NCBI GenBank assembly: GCA_904063045.1
Contig: CAJFCJ010000020.1
Span: 236,425-300,424, forward strand
Length of the DNA: 64,000 bases
Direction: 5' to 3'
Source: Dimorphilus gyrociliatus
Lineage: Eukaryota > Animalia > Annelida
Shown here: positions 2,987-44,124 of the stretch, piece after piece
Numbering within the stretch: the stretch's first letter is position 1
Layout of the letters: each line of letters starts with the position of its first letter
The notes under the pieces: model-generated
Seen by the model: only the letters and a program-made list of their open reading frames with translations
Told to the model about the DNA's origin: nothing
Database searches by the model: none
Made by a program: the position numbers and the translations under genes

Positions 2987-5900
2987 AAGATTACTACTGG
3001 AAATTGGATATGTTCCCATTATATCGTGATCTTTATTGTTTATTTAAATATTTTTTATTGGGCTTATCAAATTATTAATGGTAACAAAACAACTCTGCAT
3101 TTCTTATACTGTATATAAATTGTATGAATTGTTTAATTAAATGGGTGCTTTGTTTTATTCTAAGTAAGAATAAAAATATATTATTGCTCTTTCTAGAATT
3201 CAAAAGAAGGCAAAAGCGTGAAAGAAAAAATGTATCATCTTCTCTTCACTCTTGAAGGATTTTATACTATATACTTTTCTTCATCTTTCATCTTTGTAGT
3301 CTAACAATGTAAAGTCCTTTCCATACTATTTATCTACACTTTGAAATATGACAATTAAAATTATTATTTCTTTTTTCTAATAATTTATTTATAGAAACCT
3401 AAATGTGACCAAAGACCGAATAAAAATAACTTTGATCTTATAACTCCGCATTTGTATGCCCGGTTAGCAGCGTTTATCCAACGCAATCTACCTAGATAGA
3501 ATAAACTTTTTCTTCTCTTTTATCCCTTTCCTTTCCTAACGAAAATGGAAAACGAGATGAAGGGATTTTTTTCCTATTAATAAACAGACTATATATATAT
3601 ATATATGTATATATATTTATATTCTTGATAAAACATACTTAATAATAACCTTCTCAATTCCTAGATAAAATAAAAATAAAATAAAGCCAATTTTCATTTA
3701 AATAATGTCATTTGTTCCAGATATATAAATAATAAAGAGGTGTTTTTCTTTTAAAGGAGATTTGACTGTAATCTTTGGAATTAAAATTTTAAGAGGAAAA
3801 CAAATTCGCTAAGGGATTAAATTTTCTCATAAAGACTAGCACTTGATCACTTTTGCAGGGTTATATGAATTTTCCAAGCTTTCACATTTTCTTAGATTAT
3901 TCCTTCTATGGAATGGTGTTTCTTTTCCGCCTACAGCTCTTCCAACACATTATTTATTTATATATATACTGTATAACTATATATATATATATCTATATAC
4001 TGTATATGTATTACGTAAAAAAAATATAGCACATTTCCTATGAAACAAATATACATCAAAGTTTTGTATGAAAACATAGGGGATTTCTATATGAAGCTTT
4101 ATGATCAGATATATGAGGATTCGTGACTATGTCTCCTTTTTATGTAATGTGTACATTTTGTAATATATGTATGTATAGCATATTTATAAAGTATATATGT
4201 AATTTATAAGAAGAAAAATTCTATGGCATGTGAAATAATTACGCCTACCTTGTGAGCAATTCATCTTATATCTCTTATCGTTAATTCATAAATAACATAC
4301 AAATCAGAGTGTTTTGTGGATACGGTAGTTTCATCTCTATAAAAATAGAATAAGAAACGTTCTAAATGTAGTCTTGGTGTATTATACTTGGAACGTCTTT
4401 ATTAGTATGTGTTAAAAATACAACGTATCATTTGCTTCGTTCGATTCGGCATTCATATGAATAAAAAGATGCTCTATTCTGCTTTTCGATGTCATATTCT
4501 CATGCCTCATTGACGTCATATTGCGTGTTTACTTATTTCATCGATCGACTAGATTTTTACAATATCAAAAAGAAAATAAATAATAAAAAACAATCACGAG
4601 AAAATATTTTTAGATTTTATTAAAAGAGAGTAGAACAATTGATTTTATGAAAAACATTTTTCGTAATAGACCAAAATATTCTAGTATGTAAATCTTTTCT
4701 CACTCGACAATTTCTTTTTGATATCGGCTTGTCTGGTGAAATGGACTTGGAGATGACGATAGCTAATTAACAACTGATGCCATAAGGTAAGTATTAAGTA
4801 AAAGGTGAAGAAGTTTCGATTTAACTTGGCTTATTGAAGCCGGTTTATTTCCTTTTTCTGGTTAAATCATTTTGTCTTAATAATCTAATTCGTATACAAT
4901 TTTAGTATGACATTTCTTTATATAATAGAGGAAAATAGCCTCCAGTTTTTTTCTTTTCATTTTCACCCTCTAGAATATCAAAATTATTTTAATAATGTAA
5001 AAACAAGATATTTATCTCAACACTACGGTTTCGAATGAATATATGAAGAATCGACTAACGAAATCAATATACCAACTATAGATAATTTTTCCTTGCTGGA
5101 TCATTGAACTTGCAGACAACTTTTTACAACTCAACAACTCCTGTATAGAGTCTGTCAAGTGGAATTTCTTTCTAGTCCAAAGCATACACCTGCTATTTTT
5201 ATCTTTCCCTTGTAGACTTTATTGAAGCAATAATTATTCAATTAGATATAATTCCGATCGGCTATGGAAAACGAAGGTATATAATTTTTTAAACATAAAA
5301 ACGTAGTAATTTTTTAATGTTATACCACTTTCGCGGGGATTATATGTTAAAGAGAAAGGTGCTTATTAATTCAATTACTCTAACTTTCTCATTAATAAAG
5401 AGAAATATAACAATATTTATGAGAGTGTGGCTTGTAAACGCCATTTTAAAACCTTTTACCATTGATGATTCCAGAAGTGGAATTTAAGAAAACGATCATC
5501 TCGAGTGAAATAAGCTTTTCTCTAAATGCAACAAAAGCCTATTCTAGACTCTTGATGTAATCTAAATAATAAAAAAAAAAGACTGTTTTACCAAGAAACT
5601 ACATTCAATTACCTAATGACGTCAACAACTTTCTTATTTTACTATTCAATAAATAGAAATTTTTGCCTCTCTATTCTTGATTTAATGAAAAATCTTTAAT
5701 AAAATAGTCTAATATAAAAAATTAACTTTATCTATAATAAAAAATGAAAAAAAGAGAAACAATAAAACAAATTACATATATAAATAATACAGAAATTAAT
5801 TAAAAAAATAGATAAATTCGAATAGAAATATATTTTTTCTGAAAACAGAAGCTAGATGCAGCTGTGTAATATTGATTAATAATTCTTTAAATTAATATAG

Positions 5901-26091: not shown

Positions 26092-28992
26092 TTAATAATT
26101 AGTTAACTTCATTAATAATGGTATATCTTCATCACAATCGAATTTTAATGGTTCTTCTTTACATAAATACATTGTCTGTGGAATTGTCTTCTTCGGCTCT
26201 ACCATTTGTCCACTTTGTAATGAATTGCATTTACCAACGTATGAACAATTGGAACATGGTTCGCAAAAGTTCGAAGTTCTACAACAGCAGCTATTAATAA
26301 TGAAATTCTCTTCTTTGTTTAAGCTATTTGTTCGAAATTGATCATTTATGATTTTACTATTATTTTTAAAAGTATTTTGACTTTCCCACGAGAATAATTC
26401 ATTTATTTTTTCTTTAATATTAAATGGAATTGTAGTAGAGATATAACGGCTCTTTATCACATCACCCTTTCCCAGTCGGCTTGTTTGAACTACAGAATTA
26501 GATCTCTCTTTGTTTGATTCATCCATTAATTTATCCTTTTCATCCCCTGGATCAATTATATTTAGTATGGCTTCTTTGGAAAACTCACTATTGATAATAG
26601 AAATCTCGTCAGAGTCTGTCATTTTCACTGATTCAACACTGACTTTTTCTGGTCGATTGAATTTCAGGGTAGATTTCTCGTTCGAGTTGACCAAAGCATC
26701 CTCGAACTCACCCTCGACCTCAGTTTTCACGACTTCCGTGGTGGTGGAAGAGTGTTTAACCTTATCCATCTGGACATCTTCTTTGTCTGCTGTTTTGTTT
26801 GTTGTCATTGTGTGACTTCTTTCGCCATTTGTTATCGTCTGAACAAAAGATCCAAAAGTTTTATCATATCCTTTATTCTCCCCTTCTGCCTCCTCTTTTT
26901 CTCTCCCCCCGTTATCATCCTTATGCTTTTTATTCTCCGTTTCTCTTGCCTCAAGCACATTTTTTAAATTTTCGTCAACATTATTCGTGACTTTGGATTG
27001 TTTGGATTTCTGTTTTCGCTTGAACAACCAAATTCTCTTTTTTCGTAAGGTAAAAGCCGCTAAAAAAACAAGAAACAACCCAACAAGGCCAATTAATATT
27101 GGCATAAAGAAATTGATACCCGTTGAACCGTTAGCGGATCTTGGAGACCATTTGCCAAATTGACTGCCCTTTAGCCCGACTTGTTTAATAATTGTAGAAG
27201 GCTTACATTCTTGAACGCTGACTGAACCTGTCCGTTTAGTGTAAGACTTAGATGGACATTTTTTGCATTTATCCATTCCGTTCATTGGGGCGAAAAAACC
27301 TACTGGACATTTTTGACAATGACTGGTTCCATTACCTCGTTTAAAATGACCTTTAGGACATGGAAAACAACGCCCCAGCTCAACGTCAAACTTTGCTTGA
27401 AAGCCACCTGGGCAAAGCCATAAATAATTATTTCTTACGCTCTTCAGCACGTGTTCGAAGCGTTCAAGTAATACGGGCCTAATTTGTTTCTTATATACAT
27501 TATTTAAGTAACGGCTGTAAAATTTGACAGTACAACCCTCCGACCGCCTGCAGGCATGTGCTGCTGGTATGAGGTTATCATCTGGTGCGATGTCTAAATA
27601 ACCGTTAAACCAGCCCTTTTTGCAGTTGTGATATAATAAGACAAAACATTCTTTAGGGGGTTTCCCATAATGACAAGCTTGGGAAAGAACTTTTGATTCA
27701 AATATATCAAAAGAGGATATTTTATTCAAGCATGTGTACCCTTTGCGAACCCGTAAACGAAAAGTAATTTTAAAAAGAAATATAGGGGAGTCTGAACGCC
27801 TCCTTATAAGTGAGGGAGTCATCAAACAGGCTGTACCATCTCCACTAGATGTCGTTCCAATAGGACAATTTAAACAAGAAGTCTGTCCGACAATATTTTG
27901 AAAGTGGCGTCCTGTACACTTACGACATTCAACAGAGGCAAACCGATGGCTGTAAGTCCCTTTTGGGCAATCCTGACATTTTCCCGTTCCACTCTCACTT
28001 TTATACTTGCCCGGAGGGCAAGCAGAGCAAGTCAGGCCGCTCTTTTCCCCTCCTACTGGGCAGGCTATAAAGAAATATTGCTTAATAATCGAAAATATTT
28101 CAGAAATTTTAAGCCCATGCACCAACCATTAGCACAATCCTTATTTCCTTCGAAACCTTTGACCGACGTCTGATTGATAGGACAGAGCTTACATTCCATC
28201 TCTTGGACATGATCCTGATAATAACCAGGTTCACAGGGTTTACAATACTTTTGCCCTGTTGTGTTTATATCAATGGAGTTATTTATTTGTTTATTTATTA
28301 TCACAGAGAAATTTAGAGTATAATTCATATTCGTTTTTCTTTTTACCTTTGATACTCGAGTACGTCTCTCTTGTGCATTTCAGACATATCGCCGACCCTT
28401 TTAACGGTTGATACTCGCCTGAGAGGCACTCGACGCACGTGATACCATTTATAGAATGCTCACCGACCTTACAAGGTACGCAATTGAAATTTGATTGAAC
28501 AAATCCGGGTGGGCAATTTATAAAATACTTATGCCTTAGATCACGTCTTATATGTCTAAAGAGGATAGGTAATTGGTATGATCCTCTTCTAATTAGAACC
28601 ACTAGAGGGACGCTATTTTTCACAGAGTCTTTAATAAAAGCCTTAATTCGTTTGTATAACTTCTTTCGTAGGTCTAAAGGAATGCTTTTAGATTTTGTAG
28701 AAAGCGTTAAACGGAACCGGGTTCCTTCGTTTATTTCCTTTGTCCGCTCCGTATTTGTTGTTCTAAAGCAAAACCCTTTTGCGTATCGAACAGCAACCAG
28801 ATTGCAGTTTAAGTAATCACATATGGAATCAAAATGTCGCATTATTTCTTTTTCGTCTTTGCATCTTAAAACCAAGTCTGTGTTCTTTTGCTTATTGATT
28901 AGAACGTAGACGTTCCAAGTAAAACCGTGCAGGAATTCTATCACGTAAAATAAACCTAATAATCTATGTAGCGGAAAAGAAATGCTTTGCAT
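26092..28992 (-). CDS. Type I membrane protein with GCC2/GCC3 (ephrin-receptor-like Cys-rich) repeats, 915 aa. Exons 28992-28347, 28255-28127, 28064-26092
   Basis: Hydrophobic N-terminus and repeated CxxCxxGxY/F motifs in two blocks. A TM helix (FFMPILIGLVGLFLVFLAAFTL) is followed by RKKR and a long acidic tail. Two phase-1 GT-AG introns (91 and 62 bp) join three ORF-track fragments in frame. Confidence 0.8.
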
Positions 28993-35828: not shown

Positions 35829-38800
35829 AGCTAAAAATGGCTGAACCTGAATAGGGCTTACTCATTCTTTCTAATAGTTCTACCCCCATAAATATTTATG
35901 TTAAGGCTACTTTATCAAAGAGGGATTTTTTCTTATCTATCGTTCTTCAGGATGAGGATGTTGTTGCTTTTCTTCCCCCTATTTGATTTCCCTTGTCCAG
36001 ACATTTAGCACTCTGTTGAAGAATCAGCTATGTGATTTTTTGCTTTGTGTGACACTAGATAAGCATCAAGACGCAAATGCTAGCTCTAAGTTGCGTCACT
36101 GTTCCCAATTAGTTTATTAATTAGCGCTTGTTCTACAACGAAGGGCAGGTGAGTAGTCAGGTGCATGGAATGTTGTTCCACTATTATAAGCAGATGGCTA
36201 GCTAGAAAAAAAACGCTACAGCTGTGCTTATACGTTCAAAAGTTTGATTCCCTACTCTCTTTTAACCCCCCACCTTCGTTATCTAATTCACGTTCCTAGC
36301 ACCTCGGTGCCGCCATCCGAGACGATTTAAAGCGGATTTTGTTTAGGTTTCGGCTAAAATGGAATGCGTTTGAACTAAACCGCCAGATGTGCTCAGGCCC
36401 GACGCTTTGAAAAGCGTCGTCAAGCGCAATTAAAATTCCACGAATTTCCTTGCTGGCTTTTGATGTCGTCGGCGACTTATAGAAATTTAGAGGAAGAAAA
36501 GGTGTATACAGGGAATGGGGCGTTATACAAGAGCATTGTTCGTGTTTACGTGAATCGGGCGTTTGTTTCGGCTGTAAGCGCTTTGATCTAAAAGCGTCAC
36601 GATAAACTCTTGCGCAGGTGCGGTATTCATGAAATTTTTTATCCAACTTTCCGTTACGCTCTACCGGCTCGGTGGGCTCCCCATTTACTAATTGTACTTT
36701 CAGTAGCCTCTCCATTAATAAATAAAGAAGTGAGGGGGGTTAAACGAAAAAGAGAAAGGCACATAGGCAAAACTAGAAAGGATTGTTTGCTGGTTATGGG
36801 GGCGGCATTGGAACGCGCTAACGAGCATAAAAGAGGAGAGTTTGCCCGATAATTGGAGTTCGTATCAGATCGAACGCGTTTGGCCGGTCATGCAGAATAA
36901 ACATCGTTCTGCATAACTTTCTCTTTAGATTAACGCATCATGAAACAAAGTCTGTTTGTCAAAAGTATATTAAAATGTAACTTTTACGTAATCATTAGTA
37001 AAGAAATTGAAACGTAGGGTGGGGACGAGTAAAAAGAGTAAATCTGGCAATATATAATTGATAAATATCGCCTGCAACCTGTCAGTTCTCACGTAAAACT
37101 GGCCGTCTGAGAAATGGGAGAAGGCGTATTTAATTACGTGCCGAAGCATATTGTCTTAACGCTCCGTAAATAAAATGAAACAACTATTATAATAATTAAT
37201 CGGGCGTTAAGCATTATTGTTCTTTTAGCGCCTCTTCTTTCATTCTCTCTCCAACCTTCCTACCGTATAAGTATTACCTCGTATTCGTATATTAATGTAT
37301 GTAAAAGTTCGGTTGTACAATAAAGGATTTTTCCTCTCATTATTCCCTTGCCTTTGGCTACATTTCAACGCTTCGTAACAAAGGGGAGATGAAGAGATAA
37401 GATTGTCAAAAGTATTTATATGACCTTCATTTAACAAAAGGCCATTTTCTTTAACCTATGGCTAAAAATTTCTTTTTTTATTTAAAAGCCAATGATTTTT
37501 TCTAAGTATTCAGCACATTTTAGGCATTTAGCATGAAACGCCTTCTATCGGTTTTACTATTTGTTTAAAATGTCACTGTAGATGGCAGTAATCATTTACT
37601 AATAGAAAGTATTCATGATAAGTCATGGTAATGGATTTAAAAAAAGACAATAAATTTCCGTTAGTTGTTTTCAATACCTTGAATACGTGATGTTTACACA
37701 AGTGCTAATTAACTACTATCATTATTTACCTTTAATTATCACAGATAATAGGTCTTCCGTTTAAAAAATTTCGAATATTTCAATAGGAAATATAGTATAT
37801 TTTCAATTTAAAGATTATTGATTAAATAGCTTCTTATTATTCAAAATGTATGTTTACATAAAAGAGCTTAAGTGCCATTCAAATGAAAGCGGTTTCTACG
37901 TAATTTACATGCATTAACCTATATTATGTAATATAAGCAGATGAAAGTCTGGCGGAGAATAACCAGACACGGATCAATAGTGACATCTAGTAGCTAAAAA
38001 AGCATTATATTTCTTTTTTTGTATACTAGTTTTATTTTCAACACTAAACATCGATAACTTCACGAACCAAATTGTACAAATACAAAGAAATAAAATTTTA
38101 GCAATTGTTGTTAATTACATGAAAGGTAAAAAGTAAAAATAGGTCAGAATTAGGCATATAAAAGGTGTGAAATGAAAAAATTATAAACACTAACGCCCAT
38201 AGCAAGTATCCTTAATTTTAGAAAAGTAAAACGTGTTTAGAATTACCTTTTTTTCATATTATTTACGTAAAATAGGCAGTTTTTTTAGTTTAATTAAAAC
38301 ACAAAAAAACTATTGCAAAATCTCCCTTTCTGTATTTTTCATTGATTTTCTCTCTTATTTAAAAAGATTTGAAAGAAAAGGAAAAGAACAATATGAGATG
38401 GCGGAAGGAAAGAATAAATAGAAACGATAAGAGAGCATTTTATCGGAATTCCTAACATAGTTTTAATAGGAAATTTACCAATGTCAAAGTGTAAATGTGT
38501 ATTATATATTTCAATAAATCAAGGGAGTTAAGACAAAAGAAAGGTTTTTTTAACTTCTTTTTATCTTTATATTAAACGGCTATTTATTTTTAACTGTTTA
38601 CATTAGTAAAAAGACGAAGTTGCTGAGAAAAAAGTTTGTAACAGTTGTTTTTATATAAAAAAAAGTATATAAAGAATATTATAATAAAAAGTAAATTGAT
38701 ATTAAAATTAGAGACAATGCCCTTGTAGGTTAAGATGAAATTTATAATAGTTATAGTATGAGTATACAGTAACGATTTATCTTTCAATGATATTTATTAC

Positions 38801-39482
38801 TCATGATGGAGGGAAATTACTTATAAATGCAATAAGAATGTCTAAAATGGAGGAAAGTAGTTGAATTATAATTTTGTTTTAGTATTAAACCAATATTAAA
38901 CAATAAAGATACAGTTTACTAGTTATTTTTAGATACAAAAATTCTGTTTTATCAGTGTGAGAAATAGAAAATTTAGCGTACCGCATTCTTTTTGTATCAC
39001 TTTTCAAAGTTTATAAAAGGGTGTATTTATCATTCTATCATCTATACTAATGGTTGAAAATATCTAGATAGTTTATCAGAATGCCATTTAGAGGTTGGTT
39101 AACTGTTTTCAAACCTTTTTTAATGAAATTATTTTGTGATTGCATAAGAATTTATAAAATGATTTTGCCACTATTTACTCTTTTTGCTTTAGTTTTATTT
39201 ATTGAAAGGAAATAAGAAAAAAAAGACAAAAGCTTCTAATTTAATTGTTTTTTCCGTTTAAATCGTTCAACAGATACATTCCTGCTTAAATGACTTTTGA
39301 CATTAGTTAAATAGTACAAAGTAAAAAAGCTATGTAAGTGTACAAGATGCTACAAAGAGATTTTTACTAATATTTTTTAATCAGATTTTTCCTCCATAAA
39401 CTGAAAATTTTTACGTCAAATCAAGCATTCATAAGTTCTGTAAAACGACAATAGATACTTTAATCTATTGACAACTTTTTCG

Positions 39483-39758
39483 CTAGTAAAATTTTAAAAT
39501 TGCCACAACTATGGAGAAGAAAGTGACGAAGGAAGATTTATGGTATACTCCACCACTAGTAGTAACTTCCGGAGTTGATGTTGTCATATTAGTTGTTACC
39601 TACGAAAGATACAAAAGAATTTCAAATATAATTCGCTAAAATTTTAGGAGTAGAATTAAAAATATTACCGTATCTGTAGTGGATGTTTCTGCTCCACAGA
39701 TGGCAAAAACAATAACGAATAAGAGAGCAAAAACGTGAAGAAAAGTTGCATAATTCAT
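39483..39758 (-). CDS. 68-aa secreted Thr-rich micro-protein with a C-terminal GPI-anchor-type signal. Coding exons 39758-39669 and 39599-39483, with a likely 5'UTR exon ending at 39843
   Basis: Spliced translation: MNYATFLHVFALLFVIVFAICGAETSTTDT|VTTNMTTSTPEVTTSGGVYHKSSFVTFFSIVVAILKFY*. The GT-AG introns (69 and 77 bp) have clear polypyrimidine tracts, and the Kozak-like context is AAAATG. Confidence 0.75.
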
Positions 39759-40567
39759 TTTTAAGCTGCAGTTGAAAATAAAATGAAAAATGTTGTATGA
39801 AAAAAAAAATAAGCATCTTTCTTGTCAAAGGAAATTTTATACCTACTTTATCGTTGGAAGTCTTTTGGTCCTCTCACTTTTGTTAGTTTTTAGCGAGTGG
39901 TGTATCTTTACCTTGTAGCTGTATTTATATAAAATATATCAGTCTATATTTACAGTATATATATGCCCCGGTCGTAAATACGTAGTCGAGGAATTGGTTA
40001 ACAGCGACACCTATGTTGAATAGGACTTTAAAATTAAAATTTTTGTTTTAATTTCTGTTTTAAAGTTTTACTGTCTTAATATTTGTTCAAATATCATTGA
40101 CTGATACATGTAACCGTAATTTTTATTTATATAAGAGATAAATAAAAGCGTTAAGCATTTAACTTATTTAAAGGACGGAAAGATATGAGAAAGGTGAAGG
40201 AGTAACGTCAAAATACTAAGATAAAAAGCCATAATTCTTAGTCTTTATTATCATCACGAAATTAGATTATTCATACAAGGATGAGGAGTATGATGGTTGT
40301 GAGTCATTTTAGGAACAAAATCGTGATTCTTTTGTTTTAACAAACAGTAATTAAGTTATTTTTTTTTATAGTAAAAAAAAATCGTAATTTTGTGGCTCGA
40401 AGTTGTGAAATTTTTTCGTCAATACTTAACACAGCCCATAAAAACTTCCGTGCATGTTTATATGCAATATTTGAGAACTTAAACTTTTAATAATGTTTAT
40501 TTAAAAAACTTTAGAATTAATTAATTAATTATTAATTGATTGTTAATTCTAATCCCAATTTTCTTTT

Positions 40568-41865
40568 TTAGTATGTTGATTCTTTTAAACCCATTCGTTG
40601 ATTATTCATAGATCTTGATATATCATAGGGATAGGGAATTTCACCTTCAGAAGCTTGGTTCAATCTTTTCATCTGTTTGAAAAATAAACATTAAATAGCA
40701 AAGATCAAATAAATGTGGTGTAATTAATGTTAATTACCTCTTCATCCGTTAAATTCCATCCACTAGAGACCTCCATTGCATCTCTTAGATGTTCTAGTTT
40801 TCTTGGACCAACGATTATGGAGGCCACTTTAGGGCGTTGGAGTACCCATTTCATGGCTACCTGAGCGGGTGGTTTATCTAATTTAAGGGGAAAATTATTT
40901 CAACTTAATATTTAGCAATTTTCTTTCTAATTGGAAAAAAGAAACCTTTGGCGTTTGCAATATCCTGTACAGTATCGAGAACACGCCACGTTACATCCTT
41001 ATCGGCCAAAGTAGAATGCGAAACATTAGAAATGGCTGCCCTGTTTGAGGGATCTTGTTCTACCCAAGCAACTCTACTATCGGTGGGAGGAAGTTGGTTT
41101 CTCTTAATTCTACAATTTAGCCATCCTCCTTTCAGAGGTGCAAAGGCTAATATCGATACATTTTCATTTTCACATACATCGGTAATTTCATATTCGCCGG
41201 CTCTAGTTAATAGATTATATTGATTCTGGATTGATATTGCGCCTTCGAGACCCATAAAACGTGAGTAATCGCAAATTTTTTGTAGCTGCCATCCGGTAGC
41301 GTTACTAACTCCAATCTGTCTAATTAACCCCCGCCTTATCAAGTCGTTCATCGTTCTCAGAACCTGTTCGACTGAGGTGGCACTGTCCCACATGTGCAAC
41401 TGATACAGATCGACAAAGTCCGTTTCCAAACGTTTAAGTGAACATTCAATACTATGCATAATATGCTTTCTGCTTAAGCCTACGTCGTTTACTCCTTTAC
41501 TCATTGGTAAGTAGACTTTGCTGGCTATTACCAAATCATTACGAAGTGATTGATTCTTCGACAACCATTGGCCAATAATCTTTTCCGAATCTCCTGCACC
41601 GTACCAGTCAGCAGTGTCAATAAAATTGCCTCCAGCATTTACATACTCGTTCAGAACTGCATGCGATTCCTCAACAGAAAATCCAGGCCTGTTTTGCTGT
41701 TGACAAAAAACACTATCAGCTTTATTTTAGTCCATTTTATTCTTTTTAAATGCTATTCTAACGTGAAATTCTTACAAAATGTTTTCCAAAACTAGCTGTT
41801 CCCAAGCATATTTTGGATACTCTAGTACCTGAAGAACCTAAAAAACTGTAAGAAGAGTTGGCCAT
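40568..41865 (-). CDS. Aldo-keto reductase (YajO/Tas-like NADPH-dependent family), 361 aa. Exons 41865-41776, 41696-40946, 40877-40738, 40672-40568
   Basis: Motifs GTRVSKICLGT, GGNFIDTADWYG, IASK, DLYQLHMWD, IGVSN and QNQYNLL are present, with the catalytic D/Y/K/H tetrad intact. Intron phases are consistent (0, 1, 0). Confidence 0.92.
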
Positions 41866-42234
41866 ATTTCTTGCAGACTTAAAAAGATGACCTTTGAACT
41901 TTAAGAACGAAATATACTTTAAAAGCTCGGAATACGAACACTTTAAACGAGAGAGTTCAGTTCACAAAATACGAAACAAGTGTCGCCATCTATTTTCTAT
42001 ATCGAAAGCTACTCAAACTTCTTTTCGATATCATTGGCAATAGACTATAAAAACTACATCTAGAATTCATCGATTAGTTAAATTTGCACACAGCTATTAC
42101 TATACTTTAACGTCTATTTCCGTTTCATGTAAACACTAACATAAAATTGCCGTTAAAGCTATACACAATCAAAATATATTTAAGTGATATTTTATGGAGA
42201 AAATATAAATAATTTTTAAAATTATAATAAAAAT

Positions 42235-43116: not shown

Positions 43117-44124
43117 TTAATCATCTGATCTTGGCAGAGAGTTAGTTGGTTCTTCTTTAGAGCTAGGTGTGCCGTGATTTCCCACGGGTTTCGACCTTTC
43201 TATCATCTTCTTTAACTGATTCCAAAATCGTTTATTTGTTGTGCAATAAATAAAAAAGTTTACTGAATGTTGAAGGCAAACTAACAGAAGTGAAATACTA
43301 GAAAGAGTGCGATATAGATTGCTCTGCAGTAAGTTATTATTATTTCTTGTTACCGCTGTAATAAAAGTTCTAGATAGGATTGAAGATGGTAGTTCACCAA
43401 TTATAAAGACGAAAACAACAACAATTAACATCTTTGTAAGTTTTCTTTGATAAATTTCTCTATTTTTCGCTTCGTTATCCCTAGACGACATCATTTCCCG
43501 GTATTTTTTAGTTGCTCTTCGAACTCCAAATACTAAGAGGATATTCAAAATTATTAAAGATATAGTAGCGCCAACTGTAATTGTAACAAAATGAATCCAC
43601 GTGTATATCCTAAATATCCGCTTTTTAGTGTAAGATTTCCTCTCAACGATTCCATTTCGTTCTCGAAACACGAAGAATCGTGGTAAACATAGAAAAAAAG
43701 CAAACACCCAAATGAAGATACAAATCCTTCTTGCAAGACTCCTTGTACCCAAAGATCTAGCTTTTAACGGATAAAATACAAACAAGCATCTCTCAGTACT
43801 GACCGCAACGGTTACCAAAACACTGACAGCGGAAGTAACTGATCCAACTGGCCAGTAAATATATGCTTGAATAATAGCCCATGCACGTTTACCTCGTCCA
43901 TGCGATTTTGAAATCGTAAATAGGGCGAAAGCAAAAACTGTTAATAAATCGGCAATTGCTAAATTAATTAAATAAACATAACAAGACTCTCGAAAGTAGC
44001 GCCTTCTTATTAACAGCAACGCAATTGTTAGAGCGTTTAATATAAAACCAATACCGGTTACTGGTGGAATTACGTAACCATATATAACTTGTTCAATTTT
44101 TAGTTGAGGCGTTGTTGCATTCAT
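43117..44124 (-). CDS. Intronless rhodopsin-class GPCR, FMRFamide-receptor-like/orphan peptide group, 335 aa
   Basis: GFILN (TM1), LAIADL (TM2), VSTERC (DRY position), LPRFF (TM4), GELP (TM6) and HSVNFFIY (TM7). A splice acceptor just upstream of the ATG suggests a non-coding first exon. Confidence 0.88.
   Translation of the reverse strand: MNATTPQLKIEQVIYGYVIPPVTGIGFILNALTIALLLIRRRYFRESCYVYLINLAIADLLTVFAFALFTISKSHGRGKRAWAIIQAYIYWPVGSVTSAVSVLVTVAVSTERCLFVFYPLKARSLGTRSLARRICIFIWVFAFFLCLPRFFVFRERNGIVERKSYTKKRIFRIYTWIHFVTITVGATISLIILNILLVFGVRRATKKYREMMSSRDNEAKNREIYQRKLTKMLIVVVFVFIIGELPSSILSRTFITAVTRNNNNLLQSNLYRTLSSISLLLVCLQHSVNFFIYCTTNKRFWNQLKKMIERSKPVGNHGTPSSKEEPTNSLPRSDD

Follow-up and report, generated by a model that had tools for sequence, protein, structure and literature searches.

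The window studied here, i.e., the whole stretch of 64,000 nucleotides of Dimorphilus gyrociliatus DNA that was analyzed, harbors on its minus strand a short two-exon gene, referred to as the mini-gene in the following, which encodes a precursor of 68 residues (30 and 38 amino acids as translated exon by exon). The genome of this annelid was described to consist of approximately 350 scaffolds and to feature a median intron length of 66 bp (PMC7854359). The mini-gene is organized as follows:

39929-39922, minus strand: TATA box (TATAAATA), lying 24 nt ahead of the transcript contig's 5' end and present in the related worm too
approximately 39847-39905, minus strand: 5'UTR exon of 59 nt without an ATG, equal to the first 59 contig letters before the joint at 39847
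39846-39766, minus strand: 5'UTR intron, 81 nt, GT..AG, with the joint 39765/39847 in the runs X2 (depth 1154) and X1
39765-39669, minus strand: second exon, 7 nt of 5'UTR (CTTAAAA) followed by CDS exon 1
39758-39669, minus strand: CDS exon 1, 90 nt, 30 codons, ATG at 39758, last codon ACG directly before GT
39668-39600, minus strand: CDS intron, 69 nt, GT..AG, phase 0, located after the ACG codon as in the relative
39599-39483, minus strand: CDS exon 2, 38 codons (114 nt) plus TAG
39482-39243 at least (contig end), minus strand: 3'UTR with ATTAAA hexamers at 39464-39459, 39381-39376, and 39245-39240

Transcript evidence was obtained from two public sequencing runs (X1 and X2), which were compared with positions 38000-42000 of the window. 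The library type of run X2 is unrecorded; however, three canonical introns of the neighboring gene are absent from its contigs, for which reason the run was regarded as cDNA. A 513-nt contig of this run covers positions 39243-39595 and 39665-39765 as well as the 59-nt 5' exon, and its CDS joint, comprising five ambiguous letters, fits 39599/39669 with GT..AG ends on the minus strand. The first-pass annotation, made from the letters alone, had proposed a hidden two-exon gene for 68 amino acids that was missed by the ORF track, and the spliced contig confirms both this gene and its CDS intron. In contrast, the 5'UTR intron had been placed at 39842-39766, whereas the RNA of both runs locates the donor 4 nt further upstream (39846-39766). 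Two neighboring candidate donors are present at 39842-39846 (GTAGGT, then GTATAA), the upstream one being used in the RNA, and the aligned place in the relative (L005:4300-4309) features a GTATAA-type donor only.

The 5'UTR-intron joint was also found in run X1, which originates from an independent study, namely a coral metatranscriptome. The k-mer depth of the mini-gene contig in run X2 amounted to approximately 1150 compared to 3-6 for the unspliced background, although contig depth cannot rank expression. Since the 5'UTR exon lacks an ATG, the frame opens at the first AUG of the mRNA. The mini-gene is thus real, spliced, and transcribed from a TATA promoter. A further joint in run X2 (38665/40511), which skips the whole mini-gene, was rejected as a probable assembly chimera in view of its depth of 14, a side of 21 letters, and its non-canonical ends.

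Run X1 (2024) contains spliced and unspliced contigs with 95-99% identity to the mini-gene locus (39679-39952) and to the neighboring reductase (40738-41874), indicating that the coral sample included a close strain of D. gyrociliatus or a sister species. One of the differences, located in exon 1, results in a Val15-to-Ala exchange within the predicted signal peptide. Altogether, five differences were counted in the 81-nt intron versus two in 193 bases of exon and promoter (Fisher p 0.025), which is suggestive only.

The precursor encoded by the mini-gene can be divided into the following predicted segments:

39758-39690, minus strand: predicted signal peptide, residues 1-23, with an apolar core of approximately 12 amino acids and cleavage between C-G-A and E by the -3/-1 rule
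39689-39669, minus strand: first 7 residues of the predicted mature glycopeptide, end of exon 1
39599-39555, minus strand: remainder of the predicted mature glycopeptide, encoded by exon 2, 15 amino acids, 9 of them Ser/Thr, with an N-M-T sequon at 39590-39582
39557-39549, minus strand: small-residue triplet S-G-G, predicted omega residue being the Ser at 39557-39555, aligned with A-G-A of the relative
39554-39486, minus strand: predicted removed GPI attachment signal, consisting of G-G, the 6-residue spacer VYHKSS, and a hydrophobic end of 15 residues up to the C-terminus

The predicted mature peptide accordingly comprises 7 + 15 = 22 residues, of which 14 are Ser or Thr and three are acidic, and carries one N-M-T sequon; the length, the Ser/Thr count, the sequon, the S-G-G triplet, the spacer, and the hydrophobic end had all been read correctly from the letters beforehand. 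No tandem PTS repeats were found in the 22-residue core, which, as predicted, is mucin-like and no mucin proper. GPI signals are described to consist of small residues followed by 5-10 hydrophilic and then 15-20 hydrophobic residues (PMC9997660, PMC2064130), and the predicted C-terminus of the mini-gene product matches this rule with small residues at omega and omega+2, a spacer of six residues, and a tail of 15 residues.

To what extent such a layout arises by chance was evaluated by means of custom-made rule sets for GPI and signal peptides, which are crude, 2% of random frames satisfying the GPI rule alone. Among the 622 open frames of at least 38 amino acids in the window, 13 feature a GPI-like end, and exon 2 is the only one of them that combines such an end with a Ser/Thr share of at least 60% across the 15 residues leading up to the omega site. 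The same combination was found in none of 10,241 frames obtained from 20 block shuffles. The signal-peptide rule was passed by 3 out of 222 ATG-headed frames of the window, exon 1 included. As judged by these rules, the predicted layout of the mini-gene is far from chance expectation.

Further genes and open frames in the window are the following:

26092-28125, minus strand: long open frame with ephrin-receptor-like cysteine-rich repeats (PF07699, four stretches)
40554-41874, minus strand: aldo-keto reductase DgyrCDS12311, listed with 267 amino acids, of a bacterial-like 'YajO-like' type
43117-44124, minus strand: rhodopsin-type GPCR (7tm_1) open frame, 73% identity to L005:36-1094 in an ungapped alignment of 330 residues
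50317-51660, plus strand: long open frame with a nucleotide-diphospho-sugar transferase domain (PF03407)

The best non-dinophilid relatives of the reductase DgyrCDS12311 share approximately 50% identity with it, many of them being bacterial or metagenomic and a few of animal origin. The public model of this gene may be short at its N-terminus, because the transcript-derived reductase of the relative comprises 361 amino acids and a further spliced exon was detected at 41776-41874 in run X1.

One relative of the window reductase, with 76% identity, is encoded on L005, a genomic Logan contig of 21 kb that stems from a related worm and also carries a syntenic orthologue of the mini-gene. The rhodopsin-type GPCR, the reductase, and the mini-gene follow each other in the same order and direction on L005 and in the window, and the neighbors share 73% (GPCR) and 76-78% (reductase) identity between the two species. 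The mini-gene of the relative is represented by two features:

L005, approximately 900 nt past the reductase: mini-gene of the relative, with TATA box, 5'UTR intron at 4304-4397, and ATG at 4412
L005, CDS: 26 codons ending in ACG directly before GT, a phase-0 intron of 60 nt, then 39 codons plus TAA

The protein identity between the species is only 23% for exon 1 and 32% for exon 2. In a per-feature alignment, the promoter, the 5'UTR, and both introns showed identities of 0.55-0.59 versus 0.50-0.54 for shuffled sequence; being at or near the shuffled level, they indicate that neutral sites are saturated. Identity above shuffled sequence was recorded for exon 2 (z 4.5) and, to a lesser degree, for exon 1 (z 2.0). 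The length differences of the CDS exons (90 vs. 78 nt and 114 vs. 117 nt) are divisible by three, in contrast to the 13-nt difference of the 5'UTR intron; both worms share the intron phase and the position of the stop, the stop codons being aligned. Moreover, both exons are open in the relative, which, as a rough estimate, has a chance of approximately 0.5% for 65 codons at approximately 8% stops per random codon.

Conserved signal and GPI ends in related genomes had been named as a check in the first-pass annotation, and the predicted signal peptide and the GPI-type end are both retained in the orthologue. Its predicted signal peptide ends in A-S-A before N and is followed by a predicted acidic mature peptide of approximately 20 residues with 8 out of 20 being Ser/Thr and with three N-x-T sequons. 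The block N-x-T-T...P-E-x-T-T-[S/A]-G-[G/A] is common to both species, as are a spacer of 6 and a hydrophobic tail of 15 amino acids, the spacer of the relative (TAITSY) being weakly polar. The predicted omega triplet is small in both worms despite its changed identity (S-G-G in the window, A-G-A in the relative), and a triplet that changes identity yet stays small reflects the kind of constraint that a transamidase site would impose. Since the relative is less Thr-rich and features three N-sequons, an 'O-glycan mucin' character is not strictly conserved. The comparison thus suggests that the mini-gene evolves much faster than its neighbors and is under selection for its layout. So far, it is known from D. 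gyrociliatus and one relative only, the copy of the latter being derived from genomic sequence, and it exemplifies how synteny can recover an orthologue where sequence similarity is nearly gone.

Within the D. gyrociliatus genome (77.9 Mb, 349 contigs), the mini-gene is present as a single copy, since whole-genome searches carried out exon by exon and with a two-species profile matched only the mini-gene itself and revealed no paralogue. Searches in protein collections were likewise without a self match: the unspliced 40-aa ORF spanning the whole of CDS exon 1 (39639-39758, minus strand) yielded no protein candidate of 22-70 amino acids, and an exhaustive phmmer search with exon 2 across 1.84 billion representatives did not return the mini-gene product. 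The neighboring aldo-keto reductase exon was 100% identical to DgyrCDS12311 of D. gyrociliatus, which indicates that the NCBI proteins of this species are part of the searched collection. The public annotation, including the protein set, thus apparently lacks the mini-gene; the first-pass annotation had assigned it to a class that gene finders routinely miss.

Four phmmer matches to exon 2 were discarded as spurious, because they represent long proteins matched over short stretches with scattered shared residues, none of them exhibiting the layout; two of the four are Gly/Ser/Thr-rich with a repeated unit of the G-x-x-x-S-G-G type. Two degenerate back-translated patterns matched nothing in metagenome contigs, and five ORFs of the window that were looked up by exact match had no entry. 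Rfam provided no credible match at the locus, with a single weak match upstream (19 bits versus a gathering score of 94).

Taken together, these results favor the interpretation, with a probability of roughly 0.6, that the product of the mini-gene consists of approximately 22 acidic, Thr/Ser-rich, glycan-bearing residues that are displayed on the outer face of the plasma membrane by a GPI anchor. Residues 1-23 would direct entry into the ER and be cut off after C-G-A, and the GPI transamidase would then cut at the Ser of S-G-G and put the GPI lipid in place of the C-terminal 23 residues, namely G-G, VYHKSS, and the 15 hydrophobic ones. In the Golgi, polypeptide GalNAc-transferases would place O-glycans on the 14 Ser/Thr residues, and the N-M-T sequon would take up an N-glycan. 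The resulting product, consisting mostly of sugar, could serve as a hydrated, negatively charged glycocalyx component or as a scaffold for lectin ligands, similar to CD24, CD52, and the short Echinococcus apomucins. Rapid evolution of the peptide would be expected under such circumstances, since constraint would act solely on the processing signals, on the overall composition, and on the N-x-T-T...P-E-x-T-T block close to the membrane.

The anchoring, the glycosylation, and the surface location are predictions based on sequence rules. Genes for the GPI transamidase were identified in the genome, namely GAA1 (PF04114, 187 bits), PIG-T (PF04113, 93 bits), and two Peptidase_C13 loci. Furthermore, the genome contains twelve ricin-B matches, eleven of them above the family cut-off, and the two ricin-B open frames that were inspected combine GT2 with ricin and GT7C with ricin, which is typical of polypeptide GalNAc-transferases.

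Alternatively, the hydrophobic C-terminus could be retained as a membrane span, in which case the mini-gene would encode a tiny type I membrane glycopeptide without a GPI anchor. In the relative, the sequence from A-I-T-S-Y to the end comprises approximately 20 mostly apolar residues and would be long enough for a helix, and a Lys is located three residues from the end in D. gyrociliatus. However, owing to H-K-S-S, the apolar run of D. gyrociliatus comprises only 15 residues, rather few for a membrane span, a cytoplasmic tail is absent, and the near-terminal Lys is replaced by Asn in the relative. The conserved small triplet at a fixed distance of 6 + 15 residues from the end suits a transamidase site instead, so that retention of the tail in the membrane is considered unlikely.

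It is rather improbable that the product is a secreted, soluble glycopeptide that acts in mucus, in the cocoon, or in signaling, with the hydrophobic end being a transient ER tether or the peptide being shed after anchoring. Soluble CD52 sets a precedent in being a released and active form of a GPI glycopeptide (PMC6065011); however, no dibasic or other processing sites were found ahead of the hydrophobic tail in the two exons, and a conserved terminal hydrophobic segment would be an unusual trait of an entirely soluble peptide.

The highest conservation within the locus was recorded outside the reading frame:

39473-39417, minus strand: conserved 3'UTR island, corresponding to L005:4678-4735, 76% identity over 58 columns, shortly past the stop codon

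This island is better kept than the CDS, the initial 120 nt of the 3'UTR reaching a z value of 5.7. Folding of the island revealed no convincing structure (-2.8 kcal/mol), and it may therefore represent a linear regulatory site. The possibility that the transcript acts as RNA through this island, with the short frame being fortuitous or translated without function, could draw on the non-coding nature of the best conserved stretch and on the low identity of exon 1, which hardly exceeds the shuffled level, but is hardly credible given that both exons stayed open while neutral sites became saturated, that CDS indels are in frame, that the start context, the intron phase, the stop position, and the three protein modules are kept, and that neither an Rfam match nor a stable conserved fold was detected.

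Assuming the GPI-anchored glycopeptide as the preferred reading, the mini-gene could be the first member of an unannotated dinophilid family of fast-evolving GPI glycopeptides, its product being a major component of the cell-surface coat of the worm (epidermal, ciliary, or on gametes) and the protostome counterpart of CD24/CD52, either by convergence or as a deep homologue whose sequence signal has been erased. This extension is very doubtful; if true, it would mean that tiny GPI peptides presenting glycans are ancient and widespread among animals and are systematically overlooked by gene finders. In its own right, the mini-gene is a clean and checkable animal gene of 68 codons that is missed by ORF lists and is apparently outside the public gene set. 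Provided that its product is GPI-anchored and glycosylated, the compact-genome model D. gyrociliatus would gain a minimal glycan-presenting surface peptide, which would aid the study of the glycocalyx outside vertebrates and parasites. A new mechanism is not revealed by the mini-gene.

In its predicted layout, the mini-gene product resembles the vertebrate proteins CD24 and CD52, and the first-pass annotation, which had matched it to both, gave a fair description in this respect; support for homology was not obtained, and homology to either protein is undetectable at the sequence level. A Pfam-A hmmscan of each exon separately with E values up to 10 reported no family, including no match to CD24 (PF14984) or CD52. 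In a comparison based on language-model features of the Atlas, the CD24 cluster (476 out of 518 members with a recorded phylum being chordates) was the third nearest, with a score of 0.79, which lies below the 0.9 line, where chance matches are common. CD24 (heat-stable antigen) likewise features a signal peptide, a Ser/Thr/Asn-rich mucin-like core of approximately 30 residues, and a GPI signal, and its mature peptide evolves fast as well. The mini-gene has, as predicted, a signal peptide, a short Ser/Thr/Asn-rich core, and a GPI signal, a layout that is common to unrelated proteins and hence no proof of CD24 membership.

CD52 (CAMPATH-1 antigen) has a two-exon coding layout, and its mature peptide carries one large sialylated N-glycan on approximately 12 residues. 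Similar to the predicted mini-gene product, it is made as a very short precursor with a signal peptide, a tiny glycan-dominated mature peptide, and a GPI signal. The peptide of approximately 12 residues with a single N-glycan differs, however, from the 22 residues with 14 Ser/Thr predicted for the mini-gene. The CD52 ORF comprises 183 bp (PMC6395743). CD52 acts in a Siglec-10/HMGB1 axis (PMC6065011), which is without a known annelid counterpart.

Among protists, the small surface mucins of Trypanosoma cruzi (TcSMUG / Gp35/50) are short, Thr-rich, GPI-anchored surface glycoconjugates as well (PMC3828161, PMC6544316); unlike the mini-gene, they form an intronless multigene family with a role at the parasite-vector interface, and they are unrelated by descent.

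The closest described invertebrate analogue is EGC00317, an apomucin of the Echinococcus granulosus cyst wall, which was compared by layout from its description only. This spiralian protein is short, non-repetitive, and highly expressed; its signal peptide and acidic N-terminus are followed by a core rich in Thr, with 11 Thr and 3 Ser as predicted sites, and a GPI signal is predicted as well (PMC3510090). EGC00317 originates from a parasitic flatworm, was proposed to build the laminated layer, and belongs to a family with a common C-terminal signal (PMC3510090), whereas the mini-gene is a single-copy gene of a free-living annelid. Since tiny apomucins with GPI signals have thus already been described in the spiralian Echinococcus (PMC3510090), such proteins as a class are no novelty among invertebrates. 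The processing signals of EGC00317 and its E. multilocularis orthologue are far better conserved than the mature core (PMC3510090), and the mini-gene resembles this pair in evolving fast while its predicted layout is kept.
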